Shown piece after piece: positions 2,921 to 64,000 of a stretch of 64,000 bases of DNA (positions are counted from its first letter, which is position 1; each line of letters opens with the position of its first letter). The DNA comes from Basidiobolus meristosporus CBS 931.73 (Eukaryota > Fungi > Basidiobolomycota), in NCBI GenBank assembly GCA_002104905.1, contig MCFE01000043.1, forward strand, positions 137,236 to 201,235. Direction: 5' to 3'. The notes beneath the pieces were generated by a model, which saw only the letters and a program-made list of their open reading frames with translations, was not told the DNA's origin and made no database searches. Both the position numbers and the translations under genes were made by a program.

Positions 2921-2945
2921 AACAACATTTAAAACTTAGCCTATT

Positions 2946-23159: not shown

Positions 23160-23408
23160 CCCCAACCCTAACCCAATCTGACCTGATCATCCACCTATCC
23201 ACTGACCGTTTGTCGCGTACACCCACTCGGGAAGGGAACCTCCGCCAATCATGGCACTTACGAAGGATCCAGACAACAAACCACCCACCTAATAAACACC
23301 CATTCCCAGACCGCAATCTTGATTGGTCCCTCGATCGGTAGTTGTAAATAAACCGTGGATCGAGCATTTATTTGCCCATCACATATCGATATCGCCACTT
23401 ACCGAGTC

Positions 23409-27324: not shown

Positions 27325-27667
27325 GCGAACTCGTCCACCGACCATCACCTATGTACATACATATTCCCTTAATTCACCTCTTCCAATATCGTGAATAATA
27401 AATCCAATCCATTTTTCCATTCATTGTTGATTCCCCATGCCTCCGTAGTCGATTTGTTTTTCACCTGTCGACCGGCATCTTGATTGCCAAAAATATTGAT
27501 GAAAAAATATCCCAGTCCGGAAGCCAATGATCGTTCTGTCGAGACTTCCAACGACAAAAAAATCCCAATTCCTGATGTGCGAGCGTTCGGCAACGAAGAG
27601 GGGGGGGGGGGGATCGCTATATCTGGATTGATCCAGGTTCGTTCTTGGAAGTGTCAGTATTTTCGAC

Positions 27668-30600: not shown

Positions 30601-32488
30601 CATGACAACCCAGCTGATCAAAATCATCAACACGTTCGCCAAGACCGCCAACATCAGAAACGCCCTCCTTGCGTGTGGTAAGTTCTTTGCCCGGGCCTCT
30701 CCAGCAGTTCGATCGCTCACTCGACGTAGAAAAATTCCCGGTTCTTATCCAGTTCTTCACTCAACACCTCGGAAACTTCCCGGAGATCGTTCACAGGTAG
30801 CTGGTCGGACAACGGCTCGATTCCACCGCAACTCCTAACCCATCCCAAGTGCTTTGATTCAAGCCATCACTCTAGTCATCTCGGGTGCTTCGTCGGAGGT
30901 GCAACGCCAGCAATACTTTGGCCTTGTGACTGGCGCCGTGGAGGTAAGTCCCGCCATCCTGCCCATGGATTGTTCAGCCCCATTCACCTCGGCCGAGTAG
31001 AAGCAATTCGTCGCCGTGCTCCAGCGCCCTGATTTCAATCAAGTCTACCAGAACTCCGATGTCATTTCCCAAGTGCTGAACTCGCTTGATGTACGTATTC
31101 TTGTTCCCTGCCGCCCGGCCGTTGCTAACACCCCTGCCCCAGATGCTCGATGGACTGGCCTTGGCTGCCGACCCCTTCAACACCAAGTATATCCACGCGT
31201 TTGCTTCCCGATTCTTCGAAAGCCTTGCCCAGCTTCTCAATATTTATCAACGCCACCCTGAAGTGGAGATCCAGATCATCCAGCTGCTTTCGTCCTTGTG
31301 CAAATATCTGGTGAGTGCCGCGGAGTCTGTATCGTTCTGCTGCGTCTAACCCCCCTCGGAACTCAGGACTTTAGTGAGCTCGAGGCGCACCAGGTCAGAG
31401 ACTTCTATCTGGTCATCGGAAACGCCATCAAGGTCTATTCTACCCAGAGCCTTAGTAAGCGTCTATTCAACCTCAACCTCAGCCTCAACCCTCACCACGC
31501 ATCTGCCCTAACCCCTCCCAAGACAAGGCCAGGGATCGCAATTACGACAAGCAGCAGGAGAACCCTTACCAAGACATCGTTGCCTTCACCAAGCTGTTGT
31601 TGGCTCTGATCGTCTCTGAGCCCTCGGCCGCCGACGTCGCCGAAATCCTCTTCTTCGGAACAAACCAACTGATTCCCCTGATGACCTTGGAGATGCTCGA
31701 GGTTGGTGCCTCGATGTAATGTGGGTGGGTCCCCGTCGCGCTAACCTCGTCTTTGCTTAGATCCCCAAGATCTGCGGCGATTATGTGGAGCTTATTGCCC
31801 AGTTGATTGACCGTTACCACGACAGACTGGTCAACCTTCCATCCGACCTATTCGTAAGCCTGATGCAGTCCCTGGAGTACGCGCTCAGACAATATCCTTT
31901 CTATGCCAGACACCACTGCTAGCTTCGTGGCCCCTAGGCTCCTTGACTCGTGTCCCCACCCCTATCTATGACATCTCTAGGTTAGCCTTCCAGTCCATAG
32001 CCTCCCTGGCCCTATTCTTCGCCAACAACCCCTCTGCCAAAGGTACGCCCACTGTCCAGCTTCCCATTCGTCGCTCTGACTAACTTCCCTGCAGAGTTCC
32101 TCCTTCCGACCATGCGGAAGTTCCTGGACCAGATCATGAACATGCTGCTGTACGAGGAATTCGACATGGACTTGCTCGAACCGGCTAGCGAAGCCTTGTA
32201 CTTGCTAATCGCTTCCCAACAGGTAGCCACCCCTTCACATGACCTGCCCTCGCACCCCGTATTGAACTCCCTTCCACTTAGGAGCAATTGAGCGTCATCG
32301 CCCACACCGTCATTCAGCAACAAGTCAACCCGCAAGTCCAGGTGAGATTGTCCGGCTACTTCACCCACCTCCAGCAATCCATACCCGCGGTGCAAACGTA
32401 TCCGCTGATGGCGAATTGCTCCGCCGGCTTCCGAGACACCCTCACGAAATTCTTGATGGACATTCGAGGTGTCTTGCGAGTCAAATAA
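27668..32488 (+). CDS. XPO4: Exportin-4 (importin-beta family), multi-exon, roughly two dozen short introns
   Basis: Exon peptides MDYANVLKELEEACADFH / VPATRVAAEQTLLAFQK / DEFSSTKASSIGLSWDFHFACKQSFE / HEQIHWLLLIAGHVLCD, and the C-terminus FLMDIRGVLRVK*, resemble metazoan XPO4 (...GGLLCVK). Repeated GT(A/G)AG...CTAAC/CTGAC...YAG introns. Exon boundaries not fully resolved. Confidence 0.85.
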
Positions 32489-34299: not shown

Positions 34300-34763
34300 T
34301 GCTGCAAAAGTCATGGAGGAATTGGAAGTAACTGGGGGAACAAGTGAATAATGTTGCCTTCACTTAATGATCCAAGGAATGTAAAAGTGGTATTTATACT
34401 TTAAATGCTCTTGGCAACTCAAGCACATAAATATGCTCAGGGAGGTCCCAAGAACCTATGTGCAAGGTTTTGGGCTGTTTAGACAAGTTTGAGAAATTTC
34501 ATGTTTTGGATAACTGATGATTTTGTGAGAATATTCAGAGTAAATACCAACAATGAGTTTGGTGAGGATTCTCTGGGATTTGCAGGTGACAATCTAAGTG
34601 ACTAAGCTAAGTGAGTATTAGGTGCAATTACACATTTTTACAACACTCCCACTCATCTAAACACTCATATTAACTAGTTCTTATTGCAATCAAAGATATT
34701 CAAGTTTGTCACTAGCAACAGTGTGGTAAATATCTCTGCAATCATTTCATCCTTAGGACCATA
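34300..34763 (-). mobile_element. 3' end of an older Copia family-1 element (RNaseH end, PPT, 3' LTR 34300-34645)
   Basis: Reverse complement of 16480-16640-like sequence. PPT ctcccactca at 34646-34655 adjoins the LTR. Confidence 0.8.
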
Positions 34764-35083
34764 TGTTGTGGGAAAACAAGTAGATTATGTGATTTTCACT
34801 TAATGATTTATTGTATGTAAAAGTAGTATTTATACTTTTACATGATCTTGGCATAAAAACATGCAGAATAGGTTTAGGAAGGTCTCAAGAGCATGTGTGC
34901 AAGATTTGGGGCAGTTTGGATAACTTTGAGAACTTTCATGTTCTGGGTACCTGATATCTTGGTGAAAATATTCCAAGTAGTCCCAACATGGAATTTGGTC
35001 AGTTATTTTCTAAGATTTGTAGGTAATGATCCAAGTGACTAAGTCAGGTGATTATTCAGGTGGAATTACAAATTTGTACAGCA
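34764..35083 (-). mobile_element. Solo LTR, Copia family 1, TSD CCATA
   Basis: CCATA at 34759-34763 and 35084-35088. Reverse complement of the family-1 LTR. Confidence 0.85.
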
Positions 35084-35800
35084 CCATAAGCAATGATAAC
35101 TAAGTTAGTATAATGGTATATGGCTGAATGGATTAGGATTCTTACAATTCAAGGAGCTTGTTTCTGAGATCTTTTTTCCATTAGCAGGTGGTCCAAAATG
35201 GTGGTTAACAGCTCCAATATTTGCATTCTTAGCCTCATTTTGAGCAGCAGCAGATTTGGTAAAATCTTCCTCTAGCAATCATTCAATAATGATCTATTTT
35301 TTTGCAATTCAAGATAATATTCTATCCAAAAGCTTGTCTAACAGTCAGCTGAGGTCATATGAGTACATATAACAATATATTTCATTGTAGATCTGGACCC
35401 TCAATTGCTGGAATTACACAATTTTCTTCAGTAGTGGTAGAGCACCAACACATTATATTTCTTGACATATTTACATGTCAGCTTGATAGACTCTCCTTCA
35501 TAACTAGCTTGAGTAGTTACTGAATGAGTCTATTGAAGGCAAGGCATTCTTCTCCACAGCAATATCCCCATTAACATAGTCCTTTGAACAGTGGTAGTTG
35601 TCTTTAACTTTGGCAGAGCAATAGTGTGGAGGTCTTTCTCCAGACTAGCAGAAAAGGATCCAAGGCAAAGTAGACACCAAGAGAACAGCAAGCTTGGGGC
35701 TCATAACCTGTTGCAATATTCTGAGGAGTATTGGAAGTGATGTGGAGAACTAGAGGATTTACATGTTATTCACTTGTAGATTTATTGATCAAGATAAATT

Positions 35801-36079
35801 TATAGTCTACCAGCTGGCAAGTATATGCTATAAGGGCATATGGCCAAATGGATAAGGTGCCTGACTATGGATCAGGAGATTCCAGGTTCAATCCCTGGTA
35901 TGCTTGTTATTTTGCAACCAAGATTTTGTAGTCTACAACTATGAGAAAATGTTACATGCAATGAATCAATGAAATACCATTGAAGGAGAGGTCAATTCAT
36001 CAAGTGTGCCAAGTTCTTAGTCACAAAAGCATAACGTTGGTGAATAAAATATTGGCTTATCTAGCCAAACATAGAGTGA
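35801..36079. repeat. Fragment of a preceding tRNA-array unit (copy 0)
   Basis: Matches about 43107-43387 of the intact unit. Ends at the Gypsy LTR. Confidence 0.9.
35834..35906 (+). pseudogene. tRNA-Arg(ACG)-derived pseudogene, anticodon mutated to ATG
   Basis: Same body as 43140-43212 with all 5 CpGs converted. Confidence 0.85.
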
Positions 36080-39000
36080 TGTTATGTCCTAAAAACGCAG
36101 ATTGGAGTGATGAACTACTGATTGGTTGATTTGACCAATTTCAGACTGTGAAAATGAACTGTCTTTATTTAAGGTGAGTGTCACTTTTGATAGTTATTAG
36201 CTTGAAGCACTATGTTGCAGTTTGCACAGGATTGTAGCATGATTTCCAATTGCTTGTATCTTGGTCACTAGTTGAGCTCTGTCTTTGAAACTATATAGCA
36301 TTAAGGCTTAGTCACTGGGCTATATATAGTGCAAATTTCATGTTACAGGTCTTAGTAATTTTAGAGTAAATAAAATATTTATCAATAGTTTGATTGTGTC
36401 ACAAGTAATGACGGTGTGCTTCTGAAACTTGGTACATGTCTTTGGAATTGGTGATGATGCATTGCTGCCAAGTTTCAGAATTGTACATTCATGGGTTCCT
36501 CTTTGCATGGGCTGTTTCTATGGTAGTATATTTTTATTTTGTAACATACTTTTCCACCATAATTGGTTTCTTCTCCTGAAGTAACTTGTTGGCCTTCCTT
36601 ATTCCACCAGAATTGCTTGTTGCTTTGTTCTTCTGGTGTCATTCTTGCCCTAGTGAGGTAGTTTCTGTGTACCAAGGTTAGTCTGACTTTGCCTTCCCTA
36701 TCACACAGCTTAGTATGTGTTAAATGGGCATTTTTGGAGAACTTTGTATGTTCCTTTCCAGTTAGACTCAAAATTTTGCTTTGTTTTGTTTTTAATGAGC
36801 ACATATTCTCCTTCCTAGTAGTTCAGAGTGTTTGCATCTCTTGTCATAGCAGATTTTCAATCTTTCTGAGGCTCCTTTTGCTCTGGATATGGCTGCTGCT
36901 CTATTTTGGCCCAGTTCTTCTTGTTCTCTTGTCTTGTATTCTGCTAGGTCCTCAGGATCCTTATATATCCCATAGATCCGGTTTCTGGGTGTCTCCTGGT
37001 ATGACTGGGTGTCTTCCATACATCATGTAGAATGGGAAGTACCCAGTTGTGGCATGAACTCATATTCTGCAAGCAAAAAGTGCCTGATTAATGAACTGGT
37101 CACATTTGTGTGTTGCTCCCTTGCAGTATTTGGTTAGCATTCTTCCAAAGAGTTCATTGAATCTTTCTATGGCTCCATTAGTTCTTGGACAGTAGGCCAA
37201 AGTCTAGGAGGTGGTTAATGTTCAGTAACTCCTGGTAGTGTTCCAGGGATTTTGCCATGAAGTTGGCACCTCTGTCTGTTAGAATTTCAGCTGGGCAACC
37301 ATAGTTCATTTCTATTTCTTCATATATGAACAAGGCTACTTCTTTGTGGCTTGCTTCTCTGAATGCTCTTGCTACTGGCCACTTAGTGCAATGGTCTATT
37401 CCCACCAGGATCCATTGTTTTACAGAATTTGTTTTAGGTAAAACTCCAATAAAGTCAAGTGCCCAATTTGTGGAATGGTTCAACTAGCAGTAGTGGATAC
37501 ATTTGCAAGTTGTTCTGGTGAGCATTTTGGGTGAGTTGGCACTCTGGGCAGGTGCAGACTAGGTGCTTAATGTTGTAAAATTTGTATTTCCGCCTAAATA
37601 TTCACCTAACTTGGTCACTTAGATCATCACCTTCAAATCCTAGAGAATACTGACCAAATTCCTTGTTGGATTTACTTAGAATATTTTCACCAAAATACCA
37701 GGTACCCAGAACATGAAAATTCTCAAAGTTGTCCAAACAGCCCCAAACTTTGCACACATGTTCTTGGGACCTTCCTTAACCTATACTACGTGTTTGTAAT
37801 GCCAAGACCAGGTAAAAGTATATACTACATCATAATCATAAGTGAAACACATAATCTACTTGTTCTCCAATCACTTCCAATATCTCCAAGACTCTTACAC
37901 ACTTAATGTCCTTTGACATTCTTGGCCACCAAGCTTTTCTAGACACTGTTTCTGTGGTCCATTTGACTCCCAAGTGTCAAAATCCTTGGTGGTACTTGGC
38001 TATTAAGTCTGTTCTCATGGCAAATGGTATACATGGCACATTTCCTGCACTGGTTTTCTTGTAGATTACTTCTTGGTGTTGAGTGGAAGTGTCTACTGTT
38101 TTCTGTCCACTTTTCTTTGGATTTCTGGTGTGGTCTGAGTTGGAAAAGTTCCTGACTCCCAATGCACTAGTAGTAGTTCTGGCCAGTCCTTTTCTTCTTG
38201 TAGCATAAGTGTTTTCAATGTGGGGTTTCTGGAGAGGGCATCAGCAACATTGATTCTTCTTGCCATTGAGGTAAACAATGTCAAAGTCAAATGTCTGTAG
38301 GTATTCTACCCATCTTGCTACTTGTCTGGAGAGCTGTTTCTGTGTCCACAAATGTCTCAGGGAGGCATGGTCAGTTCTAACAGTTACTTTGGTTCCTTCT
38401 AGGTAACATCTCCATGTCTTGAAGCATTTCACAGTGGCAGAGAGTTCCTTTTCAGGTACTGGGTAGTTCAGTTCTGCTGCTTGTAGTTTCTTTGACTCAT
38501 AGGCAATGGGGTGTTCTCTATTGATGTCATAGGATAGTACCTCTCCAATTGCAAAATCCAAGGCATCTGTTGTAACTGGGAATGGTTGCTCAAAGTCAGG
38601 GAAGGCTAGCACTGGGGTGTTGCTCAAGCAGTCCTTTAACTGCTGTCAGGCTGTTTCTTGCCTCTTGGTCCATAGGTACGGTTCTTTGTTTTGCAGGAGT
38701 TGTGTCAGTGGAGCTGCTATTCTTGAGAAGTCTTTGATGAACCTTCTATAGTAACTTGTTAGTCCCAGGAATGATCTTAGTTCCTTTACTGTTTTAGGGC
38801 TGGGCCATGTCTTGATAACTTCTATTTTCTTTGGGTCTGTTCTGAGCCCTTTTGCAGAGAGTATGTGTCCCAAATATTCCACTTCTTGGATGAAAAATTC
38901 ATATTTCTTTGGGTTTGCTACAAGCTTGTGTTCTTCTAGGATCCTTAGTACCTGTTTCAAGTCCTTTGTATGTTGTTCCTCATTCTTACTGTATATCAGG

Positions 39001-40955
39001 ATGTCATCCAGGAAGATGATTACAGATTTGTCCAGGAGATCCTTGAGTATGTTGTTCATAATTGTCATGAATGTGGCTGGGGCATCAGTGAGACCAAAGC
39101 TGAGTACTGTGAACTCATAATGTCCATATCTTGTTCTAAAGGTGGATTTTGAGATGTCTTCTGGCTTAATTCTGACTTGATAATACCCTGAAGTTAAGTT
39201 AATTTTGCTGAATATCTTAGCTCCTTGTAATCTCTCTATTAGCTCTTGCACTTTTGACAGTGCATATCTATTCTTGACTGTTACTGAGTTGAGAGCTTGG
39301 TAGTCTACACACATTCTGAGTGAGCCATCTTTCTTTGGTACAAAGAGGATAAGAGATCCCCAAGGGGAATTGCTTGGCCTAATGAATGCCTGTTGCAGTA
39401 GCTTGGTTATTTGATTCTTCAGAGTATCCAGCTCCTTGGGACTTAGGCTGTAAATGGGTCTTACTACAGGCTTGGCTGTACTAGTGTTGATTTCATGATC
39501 CACTTCTCTAGCTGGAGGAAATTTGGTTAATTTTCCTGGAAGACCCTGGGGAACTTGCTGGCTAGATCTTGTAAGATCTTAGGGAAGTTTCTTGGGGTGA
39601 TTTCCTCACAGCATATGGGATGATGGTCAATGTCTAGCCGGGCTGCCTGGGTCATTTGGGTGGTGGTCATCAAAAATTTCCAAGTGCTTTTTTTTTTTCA
39701 CAAGGGCTGTGTATAACCTTCCTTTTATCCTTACTGGTAGATATACTAGCAGAGTGGATTGGCTTTGTGTTTGTGCTGTCATTGACTTGGCCAAATATAA
39801 TGTTTCCTTAGCTTGGAAGTGGTCATGGTCATAGCTTCCTAGTGCACCTGGCTGATCCATTAGATTTGCTTGGGAGTGCTCTGGTGAGTTCTTACAGGCG
39901 GTTCCTGCATGTTTTTCTTTCTGATCACTTTGTCTTTTTCTACAATCTTTGATGAAGTAACCAGATTTTCTACAGTAGTAACACCTGTACCATGTTTTTG
40001 AGTTACTAGGGTTGTCTGTCTGCTGTATGTGATCTAATTCCATGGGAGTGGGGCCTTTGGGGGTGTTCTGCAAATGATCTGGCCAGTTGTGCTGATTCTT
40101 CTAGGAGGATGTATGGTAGAAGTGTGGTTTGGTTGCCCATATGGAGTCATAGGTGATGGCATAGTGTATTGCTGCTTCTGTGGTTGTGGGGAACTTGTAG
40201 CTTACTTCTGCTTTTGTTCTTCCCTTGAGACCTTTTAAGAAGTAATGTATCCTATCTCCTTCTGCCATTTCAAAGACTTGTGCAAAGATGTTCTTGAAGT
40301 TTTGTACGTACTCCAATACACTATTTTTCTGTATGAGATTTTCTAGCTCAATTCTTAGTGTTCCTTGAAAGTTTGGGGAAGGAAGAAGCTTATGATTTTG
40401 GTATTAAAGGAGTCCCAACTGGGGAAAGCACAAGTGTTGCTTGCATTTGCTTGTAGTAACTTCCCTTGGTACCATGATTGAGCTGTGCCTTGTAAGTAAC
40501 TTCCTATGATGGCTATTTTCTTGTTGCCATCCATGACATTCTTTGCTTGGAACACCTGTTCCACTTGCACAATCCAGGCAGTTATATTCCCTCCAGTTTT
40601 ATCACTATAACTATTTAGGTGTATAGGGATTCTGGTATCTTGCCTGTTCATTTCGTTCTTCATTTTAGTACACAGTGTTAGCTGTGCCCAAAGGATACCT
40701 TCCAAGGTGTGTTGCCAAGTAGTAGATTCATCTGTGGGCATGTTTTCTTAATGGCTTCTACCAGTGATAATGTATAGCTGCTACCAAATGTTATGTCCTA
40801 AAAACGCAGATCGGAGTGATGAACTCTGGTTGTTTAATTCGACCAATTTCGGACTGTGAAAATCGACTGTCTTTATTTAAGGTGAATGTTCACTTTTTAT
40901 AGTTATTAGTTTGAAACACTTTCTTGCGGTTTGCGCGGGATTGTTGCATGATTCC
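36080..40955 (-). mobile_element. Ty3/Gypsy LTR retrotransposon, degenerate; right (5') LTR truncated
   Basis: LTR-like repeats start at 36080 and 40789 (tgttatgtcctaaaaacgcaga). PBS tggtagcagc (plus 40777-40786). Gag ORFs 40355-40741 and 40101-40316. Zinc knuckle CYYCRKSGYFIKDC and PTPMELD. RT 38646-39503 (LRMCVDYQALN, FLDDILIYS). RNaseH 38241-38627. Integrase 37178-37483 (WALDFIG, LTDRGANF). Confidence 0.93.
37571..37901 (+). mobile_element. Solo LTR, Copia family 1, nested in the Gypsy integrase, TSD CTTAA
   Basis: CTTAA at 37566-37570 and 37902-37906. tgttgtaaaa...cttacaca. Confidence 0.9.
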
Positions 40956-41017
40956 GACTCAAACCCACAATCCTCAGATTAGAAGTCTGATGCCTTATCC
41001 AATTAGGCCACGGGGGC
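40956..41017 (-). pseudogene. tRNA-Arg(TCT), 3'-truncated at the Gypsy LTR junction
   Basis: Matches 46181-46242 except TTCGA->TTTGA. The 3' end is replaced by LTR sequence. Confidence 0.85.
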
Positions 41018-41176
41018 ATTTCGTTCTTGTTCCCTTTGTTTTGCGTATAGATGTAAACTAAATGAAGTACTATCCGGTGATTCCCTTGTGACTCTAGTGA
41101 CTGTATTCTTATGACCGTCCAAATTTCTGCCAAACCTTAGCCAATTTTAAGTAACATTGGCTAAAAAAATAAAAAT

Positions 41177-41249
41177 TGCCGTCTCTGCGGATCGAACGCA
41201 GGACCTTCAGAACTTCAGTCTGACGCTCTCCCAACTGAGCTAAGACGGC
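41177..41249 (-). tRNA. trnF-GAA: tRNA-Phe(GAA)
   Basis: GCCGTCT..TCAGA CTGAAGT TCTGA..TTCGATC..AGACGGC A. Full cloverleaf, oligo-T terminator. Confidence 0.93.
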
Positions 41250-41487
41250 TATACATTTGCTTGAATATTGAGTATGAATTAGTTGGCTAATAGTGTAAGA
41301 TAGTGTCATCACTACCTTGGGCAAGCCCTGTTTGCCTTAGTATCTGCAATACATCCCGTAGTCATGGCATACTCTGGATAATAGTTATTTTAATGAATCG
41401 CAGTAACCCGTATGGATTTTGTACTACTTAGCCCCTTTGTAACTACTAAGGAGATATATCTGATCAAGATTTGGTTGCAAGCGTATT

Positions 41488-41561
41488 GCTCTTGTGGCGC
41501 AATTGGCTAGCGCGTCTGACTGTTAATCAGGAGGTTGGTGGTTCAAGCCCACCCAGGAGCG
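41488..41561 (+). tRNA. trnN-GTT: tRNA-Asn(GTT)
   Basis: GCTCTTG..CTGTTAA..GGTTCAAGCCC..CAGGAGC G. Confidence 0.95.
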
Positions 41562-41782
41562 ATTACCTTTTGCTTGAAGCTTTAGCACTCCCTTTTTTGC
41601 CATTCGGCTGGAAACGGGTTAGGAGTCTGGGGTATATTTGTATGTGCCACACACATGTTACTGTCAACTATCTATTTTAATGAATGTACTTGAATACTGA
41701 AGCGAAGAGCTGCACCGCCATTATCCAAGGAGTAAAACTCAAAACTTCTCAGCCAACTAATGTAGCTGGGACAAAACAAGAC

Positions 41783-41868
41783 TCCGAACACCCGGATTTG
41801 AACCAGGGACCTAAAGATTGCTATGGTAACACTACAGTCTTCCGCTCTACCAACTGAGCTATGTTCGG
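41783..41868 (-). tRNA. trnY-GTA: tRNA-Tyr(GTA) with a 13-nt intron after position 37
   Basis: CCGAACA..GAAGA CTGTAG[tgttaccatagca]A TCTTT..TTCAAAT..TGTTCGG A. Confidence 0.92.
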
Positions 41869-41968
41869 GAGTTCACGGGAGTGGGAACCAATATCAATGA
41901 TAGACTAGATGTTTCAAATAATTGCAGCATTCCCATACATTCCTTTATAACATCTGGAACGTGAAAAT

Positions 41969-42051
41969 GGAGAGATGGCCGAGTTGGTCTAAGGCGTCAC
42001 GTTAAGGCCGTGATCTCTTCGGAGGCGTGGGTTCGAATCCCACTCTCTTCA
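41969..42051 (+). tRNA. trnL-AAG: tRNA-Leu(AAG)
   Basis: TCACG TTAAGGC CGTGA, long variable arm, GGTTCGAATCC. Confidence 0.95.
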
Positions 42052-42302
42052 TTAGTTTTTGCGCTCTTCTTTTTCCCGGTATTTCTCTTGACCTTTGGGA
42101 TGTACACCACCGGTGATCAGGTAGAGCAACAATTTTATGACATGGCCACTTCACTATATGGATAGCCACTATGATTATGCTCAGTTTAGGCATTGATATG
42201 ATTGATTTGCCCGCACAGCATTGATGGATATCTTGGCAAATCCCCACGCATACAAAAAAAACCAGCAGCAGCACCTACATTCAAGTAGAGCCGTTGGCAA
42301 AA

Positions 42303-42375
42303 TGCCTTCTGCCGGAATTGAACCAGCGACCTTCTGCTTACTAGGCAGACGCTCTGCCAACTGAGCCAAGAAGGC
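42303..42375 (-). tRNA. trnT-AGT: tRNA-Thr(AGT)
   Basis: GCCTTCT..TCTGC CTAGTAA GCAGA..AGAAGGC A. Confidence 0.95.
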
Positions 42376-42942
42376 AATATGTCTGAGCGCACTAGATGGG
42401 CTCTATGAGGAAAATACCTAAGCAAGAGTCTTATTCTATAAAGCTATTTGGGGTGATAAACTGATGTAGCACCAGAGCCATGATGTCAGAAGGTAGGGCG
42501 GCATGATTGTGCGCAACAACGATAGGTTCGAATTGCAGTTGGACATACCCTACGGAGTGGCTAACCAGATGATAAACCGTAAGGCGGTTATGCCAAAAGT
42601 TTTGGCAGCCAGCAGTGTTGTTTTGAGGGGCAGTTTAGCCTTGATATTTTGCATTGATTAACTAACCCTAATCAAAGGAGGAAACATGCACATTCCTGGA
42701 GCTTCGGGTATATGACTCGGCCATCCAAGTCCTTTTTCTGTTTTGTCAGCTTTATGGTGAGTAAGGTAAGAAGCAACACCTGCGTCCAAGCAGGCACATA
42801 ACTCCTACTCTTGCCATTCCCAGCAAAACAGCAACGATACAGTAAGCCAGATGCAGCTAGCCAACAAAAGAATGAAACGTATTATCTCATACGTCAAAGT
42901 ATTGCTCAAAGAAAGGAAATCGCAAAGACACCTACAGCAAAA

Positions 42943-43013
42943 TGCATACTCGGGGAATCGAACCCCGGTCTACCGCGTGGCAGGCGGTAATTATACCACT
43001 AAACCAAGTATGC
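42943..43013 (-). tRNA. trnG-GCC: tRNA-Gly(GCC)
   Basis: GCATACT..ACCGC CTGCCAC GCGGT..CGGGG TTCGATT CCCCG AGTATGC A. Confidence 0.95.
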
Positions 43014-43139
43014 AATTACAATAGGGGGGCGGAAAGGTAGTTCATGATAACATTCAGGGGAAGCAGTGCGCAACTTTGGATGTCACCACCAAAGGCTAAA
43101 GAGATTCATAGTCTACCAGCTGGCAAGTATATGCTATAA

Positions 43140-43212
43140 GGGCGTATGGCCAAATGGATAAGGCGCCTGACTACGGATCAGGAGATTCCAGGTTCGATCC
43201 CTGGTATGCTCG
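43140..43212 (+). tRNA. trnR-ACG: tRNA-Arg(ACG)
   Basis: GGGCGTA..CCTGA CTACGGA TCAGG..CCAGG TTCGATC CCTGG TATGCTC G. Confidence 0.95.
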
Positions 43213-43420
43213 TTATTTTGCAACCAACATTTTGTAGTCTACAACTATGAGAAAATGTTACATGCAATGAATCAATGAAATACCATTGAAGGAGAGGTCA
43301 ATTCATCAAGTGTGCCGAGTTCTTAGTCACAAAAGCATAACGTTGGTGAATAAAATATTGGCTTATCTAGCCAAACATAGAGTGTACTTAGTCAAGAACG
43401 TATTTAAATTCAAAAAGGTT

Positions 43421-43492
43421 TTCCCCATCGGGGAATCGAACCCCGGCCGTCTCGGTGAGAGCGAGAAATCCTAACCACTGGACCAATGAGGA
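43421..43492 (-). tRNA. trnE-CTC: tRNA-Glu(CTC)
   Basis: TCCTCAT..TCTCG CTCTCAC CGAGA..ATGGGGA A. Confidence 0.95.
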
Positions 43493-43786
43493 CTTGTTGA
43501 TGATACTACTATATGTTTATCTCTTAGTGAACTCGCCATAGTAATAGCACTTACCTAGGCTTAGTGCAAACCGATTGCTACATTGTGAATCTGGGCGTGT
43601 GCCTCCCAGTTGGAATCTTGCATTTTAGACCATCAATTCTATATCAAAACAGTAAGATACTCCGGAAGCAACGCAACTTAAGAGTGTATGTATTCGCATA
43701 CCTCGCATACCAAGGGTTAAGAAGTGTGTAAAGTAGATGCCCTTTGCACATTACTAAATAAGCAAATATTTGTATGTTATCGAACA

Positions 43787-43860
43787 GCTCGCATAGCTCA
43801 GTTGGTTAGAGCGTGGTGCTAATAACGCCAAGGTCGCAGGTTCGACCCCTGCTGTGAGCA
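43787..43860 (+). tRNA. trnI-AAT: tRNA-Ile(AAT)
   Basis: GCTCGCA..TGGTG CTAATAA CGCCA..TGTGAGC A. Confidence 0.95.
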
Positions 43861-44033
43861 AATTTCCTTTTTCGTTTTTTCCTTGCTAACTCATTTCCCT
43901 CAAGTTATCGTCGAAATAGATACATACACAAGTGTACTTTCACAAAGTTGTTGTTTAGTGGCTTTGTTATATTGTATGCTGATAAACACTTGGTAGAAAT
44001 ATACAGTTTATTCTTTATTTTATCGTAACTAAT

Positions 44034-44105
44034 TCTCAGATAGTATAGTGGTAAGTATCCCCGCCTGTCACGCGGGAGACCCGGGTTCAATTCCCGGTCT
44101 GAGAG
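44034..44105 (+). tRNA. trnD-GTC: tRNA-Asp(GTC)
   Basis: TCTCAGA..CCCGC CTGTCAC GCGGG..TCTGAGA G, then TTTTT. Confidence 0.95.
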
Positions 44106-44464
44106 CTTTTTACATGCCACTCTAAGTATAGTAGTATAGGCAGTAGCAATATTTTATTACTCGATAACCCGTTTATTTGAAAATACATAGATAATGTTTT
44201 TACAACAGTATTTCTGCCTCATATATATATATATACATGTATGTGCCTCCGTTTGCATCTTGGACCATAGTTATAGGATATGGATCTTTACTGGGAATCG
44301 TACCAAAGATTTCACCCACACAAAGAGCGAGTATACCGCCAAATCCTCAAGGCAATACCACCCTAACAAGATGCACAATACACTATCGGTCATTTTACAA
44401 AAGTCCTCAAGAATACACCAGTACCTAGCAATATCACCACTACTCCAGAAAGCCTAATATAAAT

Positions 44465-44537
44465 GGGGGTCTAGCTCAGATGGTAGAGCGCTCGCTTAGC
44501 ATGCGAGAGGCACTGGGATCGATACCCAGGTCCTCCA
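44465..44537 (+). tRNA. trnA-AGC: tRNA-Ala(AGC)
   Basis: G3:U70 identity pair, CTCGC TTAGCAT GCGAG, eukaryotic ATCGA T-loop. Confidence 0.95.
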
Positions 44538-44654
44538 TTTTTGCCATGTTGCAGTAAAGAATTTTAATATTTGCAGCAATGCTATTTTCCATTCGCTCAA
44601 AGCCATTCATTTATATTTATCTCGGGCATAAAAAAACTGTTAAAGTGTGTAAAA

Positions 44655-44726
44655 AGGACGCAGGCGGATTTGAACCACCGACCTATTGATCTGCAGTCAA
44701 TTGCTCTACCACTGAGCTATACGTCC
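44655..44726 (-). tRNA. trnC-GCA: tRNA-Cys(GCA)
   Basis: GGACGTA..ATTGA CTGCAGA TCAAT..TGCGTCC T. Confidence 0.95.
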
Positions 44727-44850
44727 GTTACTTGGAGGGCTAATATTATACAGATTCACATATCCGTGAATGCAACAATGATCTGTCAATCTCATCAATT
44801 GCCGTTTGAAAAGTAAATCGATCAAAAGCGGATCAAGGCAAAAGTATAAG

Positions 44851-44923
44851 CACCCAACGTGGGGGTCGAACCCACAACCTTGAGATTAAGAGTCTCACGC
44901 TCTACCGATTGAGCTAGCCGGGC
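44851..44923 (-). tRNA. trnK-CTT: tRNA-Lys(CTT)
   Basis: GCCCGGC..TGAGA CTCTTAA TCTCA..GTTGGGT G. Confidence 0.95.
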
Positions 44924-45200
44924 CACGTGGCTGTATGTGTAAAAGCTTAGTTATATTCCTTTTGTTTGCTTGAAAAGACCTGCGACCATTAATGCATAGC
45001 ATAAAATCATACCACCTATATAGACATATATACTTCATCCCAAGGGATTTTCGAATATCTACGATATTTCACTGTGTGAAACAGACACCCAGAGCATGGT
45101 ACTGCATATATTAGGAGAACCTGAGGTATAGAATCACCGCACAATTGTTGTTTTGTAATGCATAGTAACAACACAGAGTAAAAAAAATATCAAAAGAAAC

Positions 45201-45273
45201 TGCTCCCTGCCAGGATCGAACTGGCGACCTTCAGATTATGAGACTAACGCGCTGCCAACTGCGCTAAGGAAGC
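45201..45273 (-). tRNA. trnM-CAT: tRNA-Met(CAT), elongator
   Basis: GCTTCCT..TTAGT CTCATAA TCTGA (U31:U39), TTCGA T-loop. Confidence 0.93.
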
Positions 45274-45442
45274 ATGTATACCGGGGATATCTTATATCAA
45301 TATATTACAAGCTCCAGACTATTTTGCGTGATTTAATACCCCACGGTAGGGTAGCAATAATCATTCAGGAGGTACAACATTGTGCCAGCAAAATTCAAAC
45401 AACATTAAAAATGAGCCTTTACAACGTAGTTGAATGCAAAAG

Positions 45443-45514
45443 TTCCCCATCGGGGAATCGAACCCCGGCCGTCTCGGTGAAAGCGAGAAATCCTAACCAC
45501 TGGACCAATGAGGA
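45443..45514 (-). tRNA. trnE-TTC: tRNA-Glu(TTC)
   Basis: Identical to 43421-43492 except at anticodon position 34. Confidence 0.95.
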
Positions 45515-45857
45515 ATACATGAAAACATTCTAACTACAATGCTGTGTTAATGTGTAAGTGTAATGTTGCACAGCAGTTCGATCGTTAATACATCCCTTTG
45601 CTAGGTCTATTTCGCATGATGAAAATTGCACCCTTGGCAGTACAATAAGTTATTGTGTGTGAGTGCTTAGAAGCCTCTGGTCAAGGTAAAGGCTTCTAGC
45701 ATATACGGCAAGTTCTTGGGCAAGATTTGATTGCAGATTCTGTAAAGAGAAGCAATAAGTATACATATTCTTCAACTCCTATTTAGCATTCACACATTTT
45801 CATGGTATAAATGTAATAGCGACACTCATACATTTGAGGAGTCAGCAAAAGATTAGA

Positions 45858-45929
45858 TAGCAGCGAGAGGTTTCGATCCTCCGACCTCGGGGTTATGAGC
45901 CCCGCGCGCTTCCTCTGCGCTACGCTGCT
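45858..45929 (-). tRNA. trnMi-CAT: Initiator tRNA-Met(CAT)
   Basis: A1:U72, G-run anticodon stem CGGGG/CCCCG, ATCGAAA T-loop (A54, A60). Confidence 0.95.
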
Positions 45930-46169
45930 TTGTTGAATATCTAAGACAAAGACGCCCTTTGACCCTTTGGTAGGACTGTATTACAATCTGATATTTTGAC
46001 TGTGCCCATGCACGCATACCTCCAGTTTAAATAGTATACAAACTGTAACCATTCAAAAGGGTATGATTCACACCTCTGAAATGGCTCTTCCTACCCAATC
46101 CTATAAAACACATGTCAAGCAACAAAAGACTCTTGATGCCGACCAGTAATCAGTACAAAAAGAGAAAGC

Positions 46170-46242
46170 CACCCCGGTGGGACTCGAACCCACAATCCTC
46201 AGATTAGAAGTCTGATGCCTTATCCAATTAGGCCACGGGGGC
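46170..46242 (-). tRNA. trnR-TCT: tRNA-Arg(TCT)
   Basis: GCCCCCG..TCAGA CTTCTAA TCTGA..GTGGG TTCGAGT CCCAC. The top two acceptor pairs mismatch, which would be explained by one missing G in a homopolymer. Confidence 0.8.
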
Positions 46243-46401
46243 ATTTCGTTCTTGTTCCCTTTGTTTTGCGTATAGATGTAAACTAAATGAAGTACTATCC
46301 GGTGATTCCCTTGTGACTCTAGTGACTGTATTCTTATGACCGTCCAAATTTCTGCCAAACCTTAGCCAATTTTGAGTAACATTGGCTAAAAAAATAAAAA
46401 T

Positions 46402-46474
46402 TGCCATCTCTGCAGATCAAACGCAGGACCTTTGGAACTTCAGTCTAATGCTCTTCCAACTGAGCTAAGGCGGC
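46402..46474 (-). pseudogene. tRNA-Phe pseudogene (copy 2)
   Basis: Several CpG transitions plus anticodon-stem changes relative to 41177-41249. Confidence 0.85.
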
Positions 46475-46712
46475 TATACATTTGCTTGAATATTGAGTAT
46501 GAATTAGTTGGCTAATAGTGTAAGATAGTGTCATCACTACCTTGGGCAAGCCCTGTTTGCCTTAGTATCTGCAATACATCCCGTAGTCATGGCATACTCT
46601 GGATAATAGTTATTTTAATGAATTGCAGTAACCTGTATGGATTTTGTACTACTTAGCCCCTTTGTAACTACTAAGGAGATATATCTGATCAAGATTTGGT
46701 TGCAAGCGTTTT

Positions 46713-46786
46713 GCTCTTGTGGCGCAATTGGCTAGCGCATTTGACTGTTAATCAGGAGGTTGGTGGCTCAAGCCCACCCAGGAGTG
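46713..46786 (+). pseudogene. tRNA-Asn probable pseudogene (copy 2)
   Basis: B-box GGTTC->GGCTC plus stem substitutions. Confidence 0.75.
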
Positions 46787-47007
46787 ATTACCTTTTGCTT
46801 GAAGCTTTAGCACTCCCTTTTTTGCTATTCAGCTGGAAACGGGTTAGGAGTCTGGGGTATATTTGCATGTGCCACACACATGTTACTGTCAACTATCTAT
46901 TTTAATGAATGCACTTGAATACTGAAGCAAAGAGCTGCACCGCCATTATCCAAGGAGTAAAACTTAAAACTTCTCAGCCAACTAATGTAGCTGGGACAGA
47001 ACAAGAC

Positions 47008-47093
47008 TCCAAACACCTGGATTTGGACCAGGGACCTAAAGATTGCTATGGTAACACTACAGTCTTCTGCTTTACCAACTGAGCTATGTTTGG
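47008..47093 (-). pseudogene. tRNA-Tyr pseudogene (copy 2)
   Basis: CpG transitions in both acceptor strands and in the T and D arms; T-loop altered. Confidence 0.85.
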
Positions 47094-47193
47094 GAGTTCA
47101 CGGGAGTGAGAACCAATATCAATGATAAGCTAAATTTTTCAACTAATTGCAGCATTCCCATAGATTCCTTTATAACATCCGGAACATGAAAAT

Positions 47194-47276
47194 GAGGAGA
47201 TGGACAAGTTGGTCTAAGGTGTCACATTAAGGCCGTGATCTCTTTGGAGGCGTGGGTTTGAATCCCACTCTTTTCA
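47194..47276 (+). pseudogene. tRNA-Leu pseudogene (copy 2)
   Basis: GGTTCGA->GGTTTGA plus several stem changes. Confidence 0.85.
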
Positions 47277-47523
47277 TTAGTTTTTGCTCTCTTCTTTTTC
47301 CTGGTATTTCTCATGACCTTTGGGATGTACACCACCGGTGATTGGGTAGAGCAACAATTTTATGACATGGCCACTTCACTATATGGATAGCCACTATGAT
47401 TATGCTCAGTTTAGGCATTGATATGATTGATTTGCCTGCACAGCATTGATGGATATCTTGGCAAATCCCCATGCATACAAAAAAACCAGCAGCACCTACA
47501 TTCAAGTAGAGCCCTTGGCAAAA

Positions 47524-47596
47524 TGCCTTCTGCCGGAATTCTACCAGCAACCTTCTGCTTACTAGGCATATGCTCTGCCAACTGAGCCAAGAAGGC
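47524..47596 (-). pseudogene. tRNA-Thr pseudogene (copy 2)
   Basis: T-loop changed (gaattgaacc->gaattctacc) plus CpG transitions. Confidence 0.85.
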
Positions 47597-48117
47597 AATA
47601 TGTCTGAGCATACTAGATGGGCTCTATGAGGAAAATACCTAAGCAAGAGTCTTATTCTATAAAGCTATTTGGGGTGATAAACTGATGTAACACCAGAGCC
47701 ATGATGTCAGAAGGTAGGGCGGCATGATTGTGCGCAACAATGATAGGTTTGAATTGCAGTTGGACATACCCTACAGAGTGGCTAACCAGATGATAAACTG
47801 TAAGGCAGTTTAGCCTTGATATTTTGCATTGATTAACTAACCCTAATCAAAGGAGGAAACATGCACATTCCTGGAGCTTTGGGTATATGACTTGGCCATC
47901 TAAGTCCTTTTTCTGTTTTGTCAGCTTTATGGTGAGTAAGGTAAGAAGCAACACCTGTGTCCAAGCAGGCACATAACTCCTACTCTTGCCATTCCCAGCA
48001 AAACAGCAACAATACAGTAAGCCAGATGCAGCTAGCCAACAAAATAATGAAACATATTATCTCATGCGTCAAAGTATTGCTCAAAGAAAGGAAATTGCAA
48101 AGACACTTACAGCAAAA

Positions 48118-48188
48118 TGCATACTTGGGGAATTGAACCCTGGTCTACCGTGTGGCTGGTGGTAATTATACCACTAAACCAAGTATGC
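48118..48188 (-). pseudogene. tRNA-Gly pseudogene (copy 2)
   Basis: 5 of 6 CpGs converted plus one other change. Confidence 0.85.
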
Positions 48189-48314
48189 AATTACAATAGG
48201 GGGGCGGAAAGGTAGTTCATGATAATATTCAGGGGAAGCAGTGCACAACTTTGGATGTCACCACCAAAGGCTAAAGAGATTCATAGTCTACCAGCTGGCA
48301 AGTATATGCTATAA

Positions 48315-48387
48315 GGGTGTATGGGCAAATGGATAAGGTGCCTGATTACAGATCAGGAGATTCCAGGTTCAATCCCTGGTATGCTTG
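48315..48387 (+). pseudogene. tRNA-Arg(ACG)-derived pseudogene, anticodon ACA (copy 2)
   Basis: All 5 CpGs converted; D-stem and C32 changes. Confidence 0.85.
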
Positions 48388-48595
48388 CTATTATGCAACC
48401 AACATTTTGTAGTCTACAACTATGAGAAAATGTTACATGCAATGAATCAATGAAATACCATTGAAGGAGAGGTCAATTCATCAAGTGTGCCAAGTTCTTA
48501 GTCACAAAAGCATAACGTTGGTGAATAAAATATTGGCTTATCTAGCCAAACATACAGTGTACTTAGTCAAGAACGTATTTAAATTCAAAAAGGTT

Positions 48596-48667
48596 TTCCC
48601 CATCAGGGAATCAAACCCCGGCCGTCTCAGTGAGAGCAAGAAATCCTAACCACTGGACCAATGAGGA
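48596..48667 (-). pseudogene. tRNA-Glu(CTC) pseudogene (copy 2); the array ends here
   Basis: CpG transitions. The upstream flank is replaced by foldback sequence from 48669. Confidence 0.85.
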
Positions 48668-48668
48668 C

Positions 48669-49185
48669 AAACACAGAAGAGCTGAGGACATACATCAGGT
48701 ACTCAATACCCAGGGCACTCTGAATCTAGCTCCTGTGGCTTGTAACATGTCACAAAAATGCATGGCACTATCTTGGTCCACTGGTATTATCTGGCACTAT
48801 ATGTGCTTTGTATAGATCTTACTTTAGGGCTAAGAATTATATATAGTGCCAGATAATACCAGTGGACCAAGATAGTGCCATGCATTTTTGTGACATGTTA
48901 CAAGCCACAGGAGCTAGATTCAGAGTGCCATGGGTATTGATCACCTGACACATGTCTTCAGTTCTTCTATGCTCTTACACATCCTGCACTACATTGACCA
49001 AAAAAAAAGGTCAGAAAATTGATTTTCTCCAACACAATGGGTGAAACACAGGGGTGGCTTTGCATAAAGATGCAGAGCTATGTTTCACACTCTGTGGCCA
49101 AGTATAGGTTCACCTATCCTCCCTGGCACACTATGGCATCATTTGGCACTCATGGCTCAATGTGGTACTATCCAACAGAACAAAT
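48669..49185. repeat. Foldback element with an 88-bp perfect inverted repeat (48715-48802 / 48841-48928, 38-bp spacer)
   Basis: Arms checked by eye as exact reverse complements, extending outward with mismatches. Same family as 2946-4055. Confidence 0.9.
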
Positions 49186-49189
49186 CAAT

Positions 49190-50600
49190 TTACTCAAGTG
49201 GCCTTTTGAAGCCATTTCTACTAAAAGTACATTGGAAGCATTGGGAGCCATATGTGGACACTGTACAAATACTTATCCAGAAGCAGATCCACAATGCCAA
49301 CTTGATGCATCTAGAGCCTTTGTGCAAAGAGTTTATGATGGGATTTGAGCAGCTATACTACAAGCATAAAGCTGAATGTGTAGATATCTATTACTACTAG
49401 TTCCATTTCCTACTTCATCTTGCTTGGTGTGTTGAAAATAATAACCTTGCTTCACCTTTTGAGAGTTTCCAATCAAGCAGATGTGTAGTGACATGGGAAG
49501 ACAAGTCAAGTTGCAGGCACTACCCTATCCCAATTTTGTAAAAGAATGTTACCTTCAAGCCCATCATGGATGTGATGAGTTGGCAAATGGAGGACAGCCA
49601 CAAAGAGTTGGAAAATACTGAGGACAGATGTACACATGGAGACACCTATGCCTATGGCTTTAAGAAGCTAAGTGGCACCTATGCATGGGTACTCAGTTAA
49701 TAATCAAAATTGGGTTGGGTGCAACAAGCAACTAGTTTTCATTTGGAAACTCTACTAAGGTGTGTCTGATTTCTCTTGGTCACAAGCCAACTTCTACACC
49801 ATTGAATACCATAGCCACACAAGCAAGAGCCTGAATGTACCTATAAGGGGGACTAGAATCCAGCTGGGAGAAGGAATCTATTGGTCAAGTACCAAGAAGT
49901 TCCTTGCAGATATTAAGGAGGTATTCATAGCAGAAGTGGCTTCAACTAAAAATATGATTGAAAGATGTTTATATTGTTGCAAGTCTTGGTATAAGAGTTG
50001 TAGAGGAATAGGGAGTTTAGCTAGTATTGTATTCACTAAAACTTGAACTGATTTTTATTGAGGTTCCAGCAGCTTCTTATTTACATTTTGCCAGATCATT
50101 TGCTGACTAATTGTATTTCCTAATGTAGGCTGTGGCTGATGACTCATTTGATTGCATCATCATCACCCAATTAGATCCTACTTAATATAACTATATCTGT
50201 CTGATAAGGATCTGCTAGTTCATCTGCTGACCAATACTACTGATTTGATTGATAACACTGATGTACTGATAGGCTAAGCATAAAACTAATTGATTTGACT
50301 AAAAACTGATCTAACTTAAACATTCAAGTAGTAGATCATAACAATATTACCCGCAACACAAGGTATATGGCAATTTTGCACACATCACACCACAAAGTTG
50401 CAGAGTTGAGGTGATAGAAGTATGTCAGTTGTAGTAGGTATGTGTGTTTGTAGAGGTTAGAAAGCAGGAGGCCATAGTATTGTTTGATTTAATCTAAATG
50501 TGAAATACCCAAGGTAGTAGTGGGTAAGCAAATAAACAGGGGCAACTCTAAAGTGGAATATGGAGTGAGCAAGGGTAGGTAGAAAAAGGAAATACAATTT
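49190..50600 (+). mobile_element. CACTA transposase C-terminal relic
   Basis: LKPFLLKVHWKHWE and GFEQLYYKH. Colinear with 2780-2920 and 4700-5650. Confidence 0.6.
49975..50343 (-). mobile_element. Solo LTR, family 2 (Gypsy-associated), 4-bp TSD ATAT
   Basis: Reverse complement of 55265-55630 and 60367-60734. ATAT on both sides. Removing it restores colinearity with about 5340-5420. Confidence 0.75.
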
Positions 50601-63900: not shown

Positions 63901-64000
63901 CAACATTGATCCAAAAAAAAAGGTCAAAAATGTATTTTCTCCAACACAATGGGTGAAACACAGGGGCTGCTTTGCATGAAGATGCAGAGCTATGTTTCAC

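Follow-up and report, generated by a model that had tools for sequence, protein, structure and literature searches.

A 17-gene tRNA cassette repeated in tandem in Basidiobolus, with one intact complement between decayed copies and transposons

Tandem cassettes carrying tRNA genes of several isotypes were long regarded as an oddity of Entamoeba and have lately been resolved in one fission yeast, so that their occurrence in Basidiobolus (Zoopagomycota) would mean a repeated origin among fungi. The locus considered here, from Basidiobolus meristosporus CBS 931.73, lies in a window of 64 kb (the whole stretch of DNA analysed, in which all positions are given) and raises the question of whether its tRNA genes form an ordinary cluster with a local duplication or belong to a larger head-to-tail array, and of why a single complement has stayed intact.

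Regarding gene content, 17 different tRNA genes were found in 5,225 bp, each of them by both ARAGORN and Rfam:

41177-46243, mixed strands: intact complement of 17 tRNA genes
41177-41249, minus: Phe-GAA
41487-41562, plus: Asn-GTT
41783-41868, minus: Tyr-GTA, with intron
41968-42052, plus: Leu-AAG
42302-42376, minus: Thr-AGT
42942-43014, minus: Gly-GCC
43140-43212, plus: Arg-ACG
43421-43492, minus: Glu-CTC
43787-43860, plus: Ile-AAT
44034-44106, plus: Asp-GTC
44465-44536, plus: Ala-AGC
44655-44726, minus: Cys-GCA
44850-44923, minus: Lys-CTT
45200-45274, minus: elongator Met
45442-45514, minus: Glu-TTC
45858-45929, minus: initiator Met, also by initiator hallmarks
46168-46243, minus: Arg-TCT, intact copy

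The genes and anticodons listed in the preliminary description were all recovered, together with its strand split (six plus, 11 minus), the Tyr intron, a spacing put at about 100-570 bp (measured intergenic gaps, 99-565 bp) and an oligo-T terminator for each gene, at least four T being present within about 10 nt downstream of 17 genes out of 17, with the positions for Thr and Gly counted from the Rfam gene ends. The initiator Met call also held, A1:U72, A54 and A60 being present at 45858-45929. Rfam tRNA scores range from 53 to 72 bits across the 17 intact genes, and the set, with one gene each, covers 14 amino acids by their major isoacceptors and includes the initiator. The anticodons fit the dominant codons of the neighbouring gene, PGM, which is located 14 kb from the cluster. 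No 5S gene was found by Rfam in the 5,225-bp unit, TRF gave nothing other than trivial two-copy repeats between the genes, none of eight spurious ORFs inside the unit was present in the protein collection by exact-sequence look-up, and an exact-match metagenome scan with one spacer 30-mer returned no matches.

Beyond the genes themselves, the whole block is repeated, as shown by the following features:

40956-46180, unstranded: full 5,225-bp repeat unit, unit 1 (self-BLAST, repeat spacing)
46181-48668, unstranded: partial second unit of 2.49 kb, copy 2 (self-BLAST against 40956-43493)
35798-36078, plus: upstream remnant of 281 bp matching 43104-43384 (repeat search, self-BLAST)

Several tRNA genes per unit and a head-to-tail repeat with its spacers are features of a multi-isotype tandem array; 1.48 units plus the 281-bp remnant are assembled at the locus. 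Copy 2 directly follows unit 1 in head-to-tail arrangement, spacers included (40956-43493 vs. 46181-48668), and is 94.0% identical to it over 2,538 BLAST columns with 103 substitutions, that is about 94% when two deletions are counted and 96% over aligned bases. The start-to-start spacing is 5225, then 5221 and then 5175, because of 4-bp and 46-bp deletions in copy 2, so that the exact 5,225-bp period initially reported has to be amended. The remnant of a third copy, noticed beforehand at 35.8 kb, was found again; it lies upstream of the full unit, collinear and in the same orientation, and is 97% identical to 43104-43384. Permissive Rfam scans of both flanks revealed no further eroded tRNA remnants. 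The cassette was duplicated as a whole block, spacers included, and exactly one complement at the locus is intact. As tandem repeats can be mishandled by long-read assemblers, copy 2 could be conceived as a spurious duplication, an explanation that is scarcely credible considering that its 103 substitutions, one-sided towards CpG-to-TpG/CpA, and its two deletions do not form a sequencing-error pattern, and that it ends in a different transposon.

The array is bounded by mobile elements, the features of which are as follows:

36079-40953, minus: decayed Ty3/Gypsy LTR retrotransposon between remnant and full unit (Pfam domains, LTR pair)
36079-36244 and 40788-40953, minus: LTRs of the Gypsy element, 166 bp (self-BLAST, 88% identical)
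39503-38646, minus: RVT_1 (Pfam)
38627-38241, minus: RT_RNaseH (Pfam)
37483-37178, minus: rve (Pfam)
40954-41018, minus: Arg-TCT cut at its 3' end by the LTR, last 11-13 nt gone (partial Rfam match, alignment to 46168-46243)
48669-49198, unstranded: inverted-repeat (foldback-like) transposon fragment (self-BLAST, hairpin)

With reverse transcriptase, RNase H and integrase in that order and direct LTRs at its ends, the left element is of Ty3/Gypsy type. The breakpoint in Arg-TCT is at 40954-40956 and the cut gene scores 30.3 bits in Rfam vs. 57.7 for the intact one at 46168-46243. Alignment of the flanks, which differ, gave no target-site duplication at 36079-40953; this absence is compatible with the loss of about 2.8 kb from the upstream unit through deletion or recombination and, together with the differences between the LTRs, means that the two LTRs may derive from different elements. 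On the right, the array stops at the foldback-like fragment, the junction lying 1 bp upstream of where the decayed Glu-CTC gene has its 5' end; the fragment matches 2952-4047 and the window end in both orientations (self-BLAST), and its palindromic hairpin (48748-48895) scores equally on both strands. Transposons thus truncate units on either side of the intact complement.

Embedded in transposons as it is, and with a fragment 7 kb from the main copy, the cassette could be viewed as carried by a mobile element, with a separate insertion accounting for the piece at 35.8 kb, in line with the earlier proposal of travel between TE-rich regions. This is very improbable, since the fragment is collinear and in the same orientation with exactly one Gypsy element in between, the 5.2-kb unit has no bounding terminal repeats, target-site duplications or transposase, and no other unit fragments were found in the 64-kb window. 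An earlier array unit cut by the Gypsy element and the 2.8-kb deletion suffices, with no need for the cassette to have transposed, and the idea of travel is not supported.

The three copies differ sharply in their state of decay. Between unit 1 and copy 2, 52 of 82 CpGs are gone from copy 2 by C-to-T vs. two from unit 1; in the spacers, 16 CpGs are kept in both copies and 21 more are missing from copy 2 only. Substitutions in copy 2 amount to 7.5% per site in genes vs. 2.9% in spacers. No mutations are present in its first 200 bp or so, where most of the intact Arg-TCT lies together with its upstream flank. Eight genes are decayed there (Phe, Asn, Tyr, Leu, Thr, Gly, Arg-ACG and Glu-CTC), the Rfam scores falling from 56-69 to 36-56 bits for the duplicated genes. 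CpG decay damaged the B-box promoter element in every duplicated gene, all eight carrying at least one B-box substitution, with the caveat that at 8.5% gene divergence such an outcome has a chance of about 1.5%. The Arg-ACG anticodon has become ACA in copy 2 and ATG in the remnant, where the decayed gene is located as follows:

35834-35906, plus: decayed Arg-ACG gene in the remnant, anticodon ATG (alignment to unit 1)

Six of the eight differences between the remnant and unit 1 are CpG to TpG/CpA; two of these changes strike the opposite strand from those in copy 2, and the two copies therefore decayed independently. In the segment shared by all three, unit 1 has the same state as another copy at 15 variable sites out of 15. 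C-to-T change has thus removed most CpGs from each flanking unit independently, as in the surrounding transposons. Copying and decay as a block, as put forward in the preliminary description, is in keeping with head-to-tail copies that include the spacers and with decay of the outer ones. Repeat-induced point mutation of the Neurospora type, in which both copies are mutated and mainly at CpA, was rejected as the cause, the loss here being one-sided (52 vs. 2) and at CpG; the transposons themselves are depleted in CpG (observed/expected 0.05) without depletion in CpA (1.35-1.42).

The preserved CpGs delimit a region broader than the genes:

40790-46400, unstranded: CpG-preserved island of 5.6 kb, intact complement and adjoining LTR (CpG observed/expected, 250-bp bins)

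The overall CpG observed/expected ratio is 0.87 in genes, 0.72 in the unit, 0.27 in copy 2 and 0.05-0.07 in transposons. In 250-bp bins it is 0.4-1.0 within the island and 0-0.13 in the transposon bins to the left, while to the right it is 0.17-0.55 in copy 2 and about 0 in the transposon. At 40.8 kb the footprint shifts over about 150 bp, and at 46.4 kb over about 150-400 bp. On the left, the limit of the island falls at the inner edge of an LTR. The LTR adjoining the tRNA unit retains eight CpGs and the distal one a single CpG, a disparity that does not stem from array homogenisation because the LTR is outside the unit. The position of the left limit could instead mean that the adjoining LTR is younger, the pair also differing at 10 of 163 non-CpG sites. 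Pol III read-through from the cut Arg-TCT was considered as a protection for the LTR and set aside, the B box of that gene carrying C56T.

Regarding copy number, four runs of the same sample (X1-X4, perhaps a single data set deposited repeatedly) contain 0.87-0.88 of the 31-mers of the unit, in contigs totalling about 1 Mb per run; for the single-copy genes at 21-31 kb, X21 and X22 alone are listed (106-114 Mb), and not X1-X4. For this genome, sequenced with PacBio, such a contrast hints indirectly at the presence of many near-identical copies of the intact unit. The earlier suggestion of more copies than assembled receives indirect support from these small runs, rich in words of the unit and not listed for the single-copy genes; the 1.48 units and remnant that were assembled speak against it.

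The limited assembled total is also what would be expected from an ordinary single-copy tRNA cluster having undergone one local partial tandem duplication and an older one, without any amplification, and with the intact copy kept by purifying selection only; one intact complement is likewise expected if one set suffices. We consider this explanation rather unlikely. Selection on tRNA function leaves unexplained why the spacers of unit 1, and likewise the adjoining LTR, have retained CpGs, and tiny runs with 88% of the words of the unit that are not listed for single-copy genes do not fit it either.

It is likely, instead, that the locus belongs to a head-to-tail array of 5.2-kb Pol III cassettes, of which it shows either the eroded edge or a collapsed version. 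Such an array would grow by unequal recombination; active genes bound by Pol III/TFIIIC would stay free of cytosine methylation and would extend this protection to a few hundred surrounding bp, abutting LTR included, while silenced units at the edge would acquire methylation as the neighbouring transposons do and be eroded via deamination of 5-methylcytosine. The intact unit probably stands for many near-identical copies, collapsed here by the assembler or residing on other contigs, in which case rDNA-like cassettes would contribute to the tRNA supply of Basidiobolus, as they do in S. japonicus. In its fullest form, which we put forward tentatively and as somewhat less probable than its contrary, the proposal is that the intact unit represents an extensive array, homogenised and numbering tens to hundreds of copies; that much of the tRNA supply of Basidiobolus, an early-diverging fungus whose genome is rich in transposons and would be CpG-methylated, would come from a few rDNA-like cassettes having arisen independently of those of S. 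japonicus and Entamoeba; and that units bound by Pol III would be methylation-free islands, whereas at edges losing Pol III the heterochromatin of the transposons would take over and deamination would destroy the units. If true, this would constitute a natural record of tRNA genes resisting, and later succumbing to, cytosine methylation. The added value of the locus resides in three cassette copies and two LTRs of the same family placed in different chromatin neighbourhoods and bearing sharply unlike mutational footprints, which provides a testable case, in a fungus, for active tRNA genes protecting themselves and a few hundred bp from cytosine methylation.

Compared with known systems, the closest likeness is with S. 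japonicus, where 5.6-6.4-kb units of 18 tRNA and three 5S genes are present in 34-46 copies (T2T assembly EI 1.0, bioRxiv 10.1101/2023.09.04.556195), besides a 575-kb array of 15-tRNA units (bioRxiv 10.1101/2023.09.04.556195). Both cases are fungal, with head-to-tail units of 5-6 kb and many different tRNA genes (9+9 or 15 per unit in S. japonicus), and the S. japonicus arrays likewise lie in gene-poor DNA rich in LTR retrotransposons and are prone to assembly collapse; the occurrence of such cassettes in Basidiobolus would also mean that they are probably under-reported in short-read or collapsed assemblies. The initial opposition between dispersed tRNA genes in fungi and "Entamoeba-like" arrays is accordingly outdated. 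The Basidiobolus unit differs by its lack of 5S genes, by the extent assembled (just 1.5 units vs. multi-copy arrays) and by a CpG-decay gradient that is not described for S. japonicus. Gene order and content are unrelated (F-N-Y-L-T-G-R-E-I-D-A-C-K-M-E-iM-R vs. Y-L-E-F-R-K-G-I-Q / E-L-N-M-T-D-S-V-A), and the phyla are distinct, Zoopagomycota for Basidiobolus and Ascomycota for S. japonicus, hence an independent origin. With Entamoeba, the locus shares several isotypes per tandem unit, spacers included (PMC2652664); there, units comprise 1-5 genes and arrays more than 10% of the genome, with complex short tandem repeats between genes in E. histolytica and E. dispar (PMC2652664), whereas the Basidiobolus unit holds 17 genes without notable short tandem repeats (TRF).

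Besides, intact tRNA gene clusters occur where heterochromatin borders on other chromatin, and are thought to block spreading there; similarly, CpG decay changes sharply at the intact Basidiobolus cluster, as judged from the mutational footprint, whereas ChIP was the basis in the other case. The silencing mark in Basidiobolus would be cytosine methylation, which fission yeasts are not known to have. In Xenopus laevis, a 3.18-kb tDNA repeat with eight tRNA genes is reiterated about a hundred-fold (literature around 1980); it is also multi-isotype, head-to-tail and on both strands, and differs in being from an animal and in having fewer genes per unit. The tandem Ser/Tyr (SYY) tDNA cluster of Arabidopsis is heterochromatic with transcriptionally silenced copies (PMC12308677), which parallels the silenced, decaying copies proposed in Basidiobolus; it differs in that it is from a plant, has only two isotypes and is reversibly silenced, its copies not being known to undergo mutational decay of the kind observed here. 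The Basidiobolus cassette is a new example of a known organisation, probably caught at a decaying array edge, rather than a new kind.

The 17 tRNA genes of the preliminary description, with the anticodons and strands listed there, were found by ARAGORN and Rfam within the intact complement at 41177-46243, with gene-to-gene gaps of 99-565 bp and each with, as had been claimed, its own terminator, namely a run of at least four T within ~10 nt downstream. The Tyr gene carries a 13-nt intron, and the Met gene at 45858-45929 is the initiator by the eukaryotic hallmarks A1:U72, A54 and A60. Regarding codon usage, the 17 anticodons fit the dominant codons (CGC/CGT, AGA, CTC, ACC, GCC, GGC, ATC, AAG, GAG and others) of a protein-coding gene:

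25492-27324, phosphoglucomutase gene, 610-codon ORF, neighbour of the tRNA cassette, product 100% identical to its Basidiobolus meristosporus CBS 931.73 counterpart

The cassette thus supplies one gene each for the major isoacceptors of 14 amino acids and for the initiator, and it lacks Ser, Pro, Val, Gln, His and Trp. Besides, inspection of 41177-46243 revealed A/T-rich TATA-like motifs 15-35 nt upstream of many intact genes (e.g. Arg-ACG, Cys, Ala and the Met elongator), reminiscent of the TATA element that Pol III genes of fission yeast and plants require upstream.

While the head-to-tail tandem repeat is real, its period is not the exact 5,225 bp first reported, the spacing shrinking from 5225 bp to 5221 and then 5175 bp because the partial second unit (copy 2, 46181-48668, with eight decayed tRNA genes) carries two deletions of 4 and 46 bp. 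Identity between 40956-43493 and 46181-48668 is 94.0%, with 103 substitutions. The remnant of a third copy announced near 35.8 kb was recovered as well, 35798-36078 matching 43104-43384 of the full repeat unit (unit 1, 40956-46180) at 97%. The assembled extent is limited to 1.48 units and this 281-bp remnant, and permissive Rfam scans detected no further tRNA relics in either flank of the array. As read from its sequence, the locus represents an array of three units, eroded at both sides by transposons:

Between the remnant and unit 1, minus strand, decayed Ty3/Gypsy element with domains in the order RT, RNase H, integrase
36079-36244 and 40788-40953, 166-bp LTRs of the Gypsy element
48672-49198, foldback-like inverted-repeat element, separated by 1-4 bp from the decayed Glu-CTC gene (5' end)

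At the left edge, the right LTR removes the last 11-13 nt of an Arg-TCT gene. Since no target-site duplication is common to the two flanks of the Gypsy element and the upstream unit has lost ~2.8 kb there, the simplest history is one or several insertions followed by deletion, possibly via recombination between two elements. At the right edge, the unit homology reaches 1 bp past the 5' end of the Glu-CTC gene in copy 2, on its upstream side, and stops there.

The foldback-like element has relatives at 2952-4047, 59785-60159 and 63893-64000, and its hairpin at 48748-48895 matches miRNA-precursor models with equal scores on either strand. Nested in the middle of the relative at 2952-4047 is a repeat of ~350 bp that probably represents a solo LTR. 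At least eight copies, 72-89% identical, are present in the window, and one of them is nested within the Gypsy element adjoining the tRNA array:

3299-3644, 11755-12080, 12275-12623, 19112-19460, 20156-20487, 34300-34645, 34769-35084 and 37571-37903, copies of the ~350-bp repeat

Besides, a Ty1/Copia element with gag, integrase and RVT_2 reverse transcriptase, including a 629-codon open frame, contains a 2.5-kb direct tandem duplication (14133-16644 and 16642-19168, 89% identity).

The gene island at 21-32 kb has 55-58% GC against 36-42% for the DNA on either side, which consists of the decayed remnants of Ty1/Copia, Ty3/Gypsy and DDE transposons, many of them diverged repeats. The landscape is sharply bimodal (38% vs. 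58% GC), with borders at ~20.5 kb and ~32.5 kb and transposon compartments at 1-20000 and 33000-64000. CpG observed/expected reaches 0.87 in the gene island vs. 0.05-0.07 in the transposon DNA, where TpG and CpA are in excess (1.26-1.43), a dinucleotide pattern that reads as the mark of prolonged deamination at methylated CpG. Neurospora-type RIP depletes CpA and is ruled out as the cause, CpA being in excess here.

In copy 2, 52 of the 82 CpGs of unit 1's duplicated part have become TpG or CpA, and only two changes run in the opposite direction, that is with unit 1 altered and copy 2 kept; outside CpG, the two copies diverge by about 2%. Substitutions are 2.6-fold denser in genes than in spacers (7.5% vs. 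2.9%) because the genes are CpG-rich. Where three copies can be compared, the state of unit 1 matches another copy at 15/15 variable sites, and two CpGs are mutated on opposite strands in the remnant and copy 2, which therefore decayed independently. Each copy-2 gene bears 4-9 substitutions, with at least one B box change in all eight (C56T in Phe, Leu and Glu, G57A in Gly and Arg, T-to-C in Asn and Tyr, and a double transversion in Thr), and Rfam scores are 6-30 bits lower. The Arg-ACG anticodon has changed in both decayed copies, to ACA (copy 2) and ATG (remnant), so the ARAGORN calls "Cys-ACA" and "His-ATG" are rejected as real isotypes and correspond to mutated Arg genes. No mutation is seen in the first ~200 bp of copy 2, where most of the one intact Arg-TCT gene lies together with its upstream flank; the surviving gene set, 41177-46243, is therefore exactly one of each.

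The most informative feature of the locus is this sharp, one-sided CpG-decay footprint surrounding one intact tRNA complement. Binned at 250 bp, CpG observed/expected lies between 0.4 and 1.0 over ~40790-46400 vs. 0-0.13 in the left Gypsy element, 0.17-0.55 in copy 2 and ~0 in the right transposon. The LTR abutting unit 1, inside this island, retains 8 CpGs against 1 in its partner 4.7 kb away, and all of the differences at CpG sites (8/8) are losses in the distant LTR. Because the abutting LTR is no part of the unit, its kept CpGs cannot be explained by homogenisation of the array, by assembly collapse or by selection for tRNA function. The abutting LTR could, if derived from a second element, simply be younger, and the 10 of 163 non-CpG sites that differ within the pair fit an origin from two elements. 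The most economical reading is regional protection from methylation, in which active Pol III genes nearby would shield the region; heterochromatin boundaries formed by tRNA gene clusters are documented at fission-yeast centromeres.

[quoted passage not shown] Four runs of the same sample, with only ~1 Mb of Logan contigs each, contain a fraction of 0.87-0.88 of the 31-mers sampled from the unit. The single-copy genes at 21-31 kb, among the runs listed from that sample (their number staying below the per-study maximum), are held by only two runs of 106-114 Mb, the four small runs being absent. This hints that the intact unit and its spacers may exist in many near-identical copies, collapsed here or on other contigs. 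Runs X5-X7, filed under the source strain's species name, share only 2% of the gene-island 31-mers (21000-30999), from which strains under this species name appear deeply divergent; their sharing of the tRNA unit, 12-13%, corresponds roughly to the tRNA genes themselves.

On the whole, the preliminary observation was partly borne out and its interpretation partly supported, while the view of multi-isotype arrays as an Entamoeba speciality is outdated, since the telomere-to-telomere assembly of Schizosaccharomyces japonicus, with 3,885 tRNA genes in total, contains three tRNA array types (bioRxiv 10.1101/2023.09.04.556195). Two of these comprise a 5.6-kb unit repeated 34 times and a 6.4-kb unit repeated 46 times, each with 9 tRNAs, three 5S and 9 tRNAs, and the third spans 575 kb and repeats a unit of 15 tRNAs; these arrays lie in LTR-rich, gene-poor DNA and are partly collapsed despite long reads (10.1101/2023.09.04.556195). 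The gene order of the Basidiobolus cassette is unrelated to those of S. japonicus and the phyla differ, so its origin is independent. Entamoeba array units have at most five genes and, in E. histolytica and E. dispar, complex short tandem repeats (PMC2652664), which are absent from the Basidiobolus unit. Full-text searches found no paper on tRNA arrays in Basidiobolus, other Zoopagomycota or Mucoromycota. This kind of tRNA organisation is thus already known, and what is new is the Basidiobolus example, caught at the decaying edge of an array.
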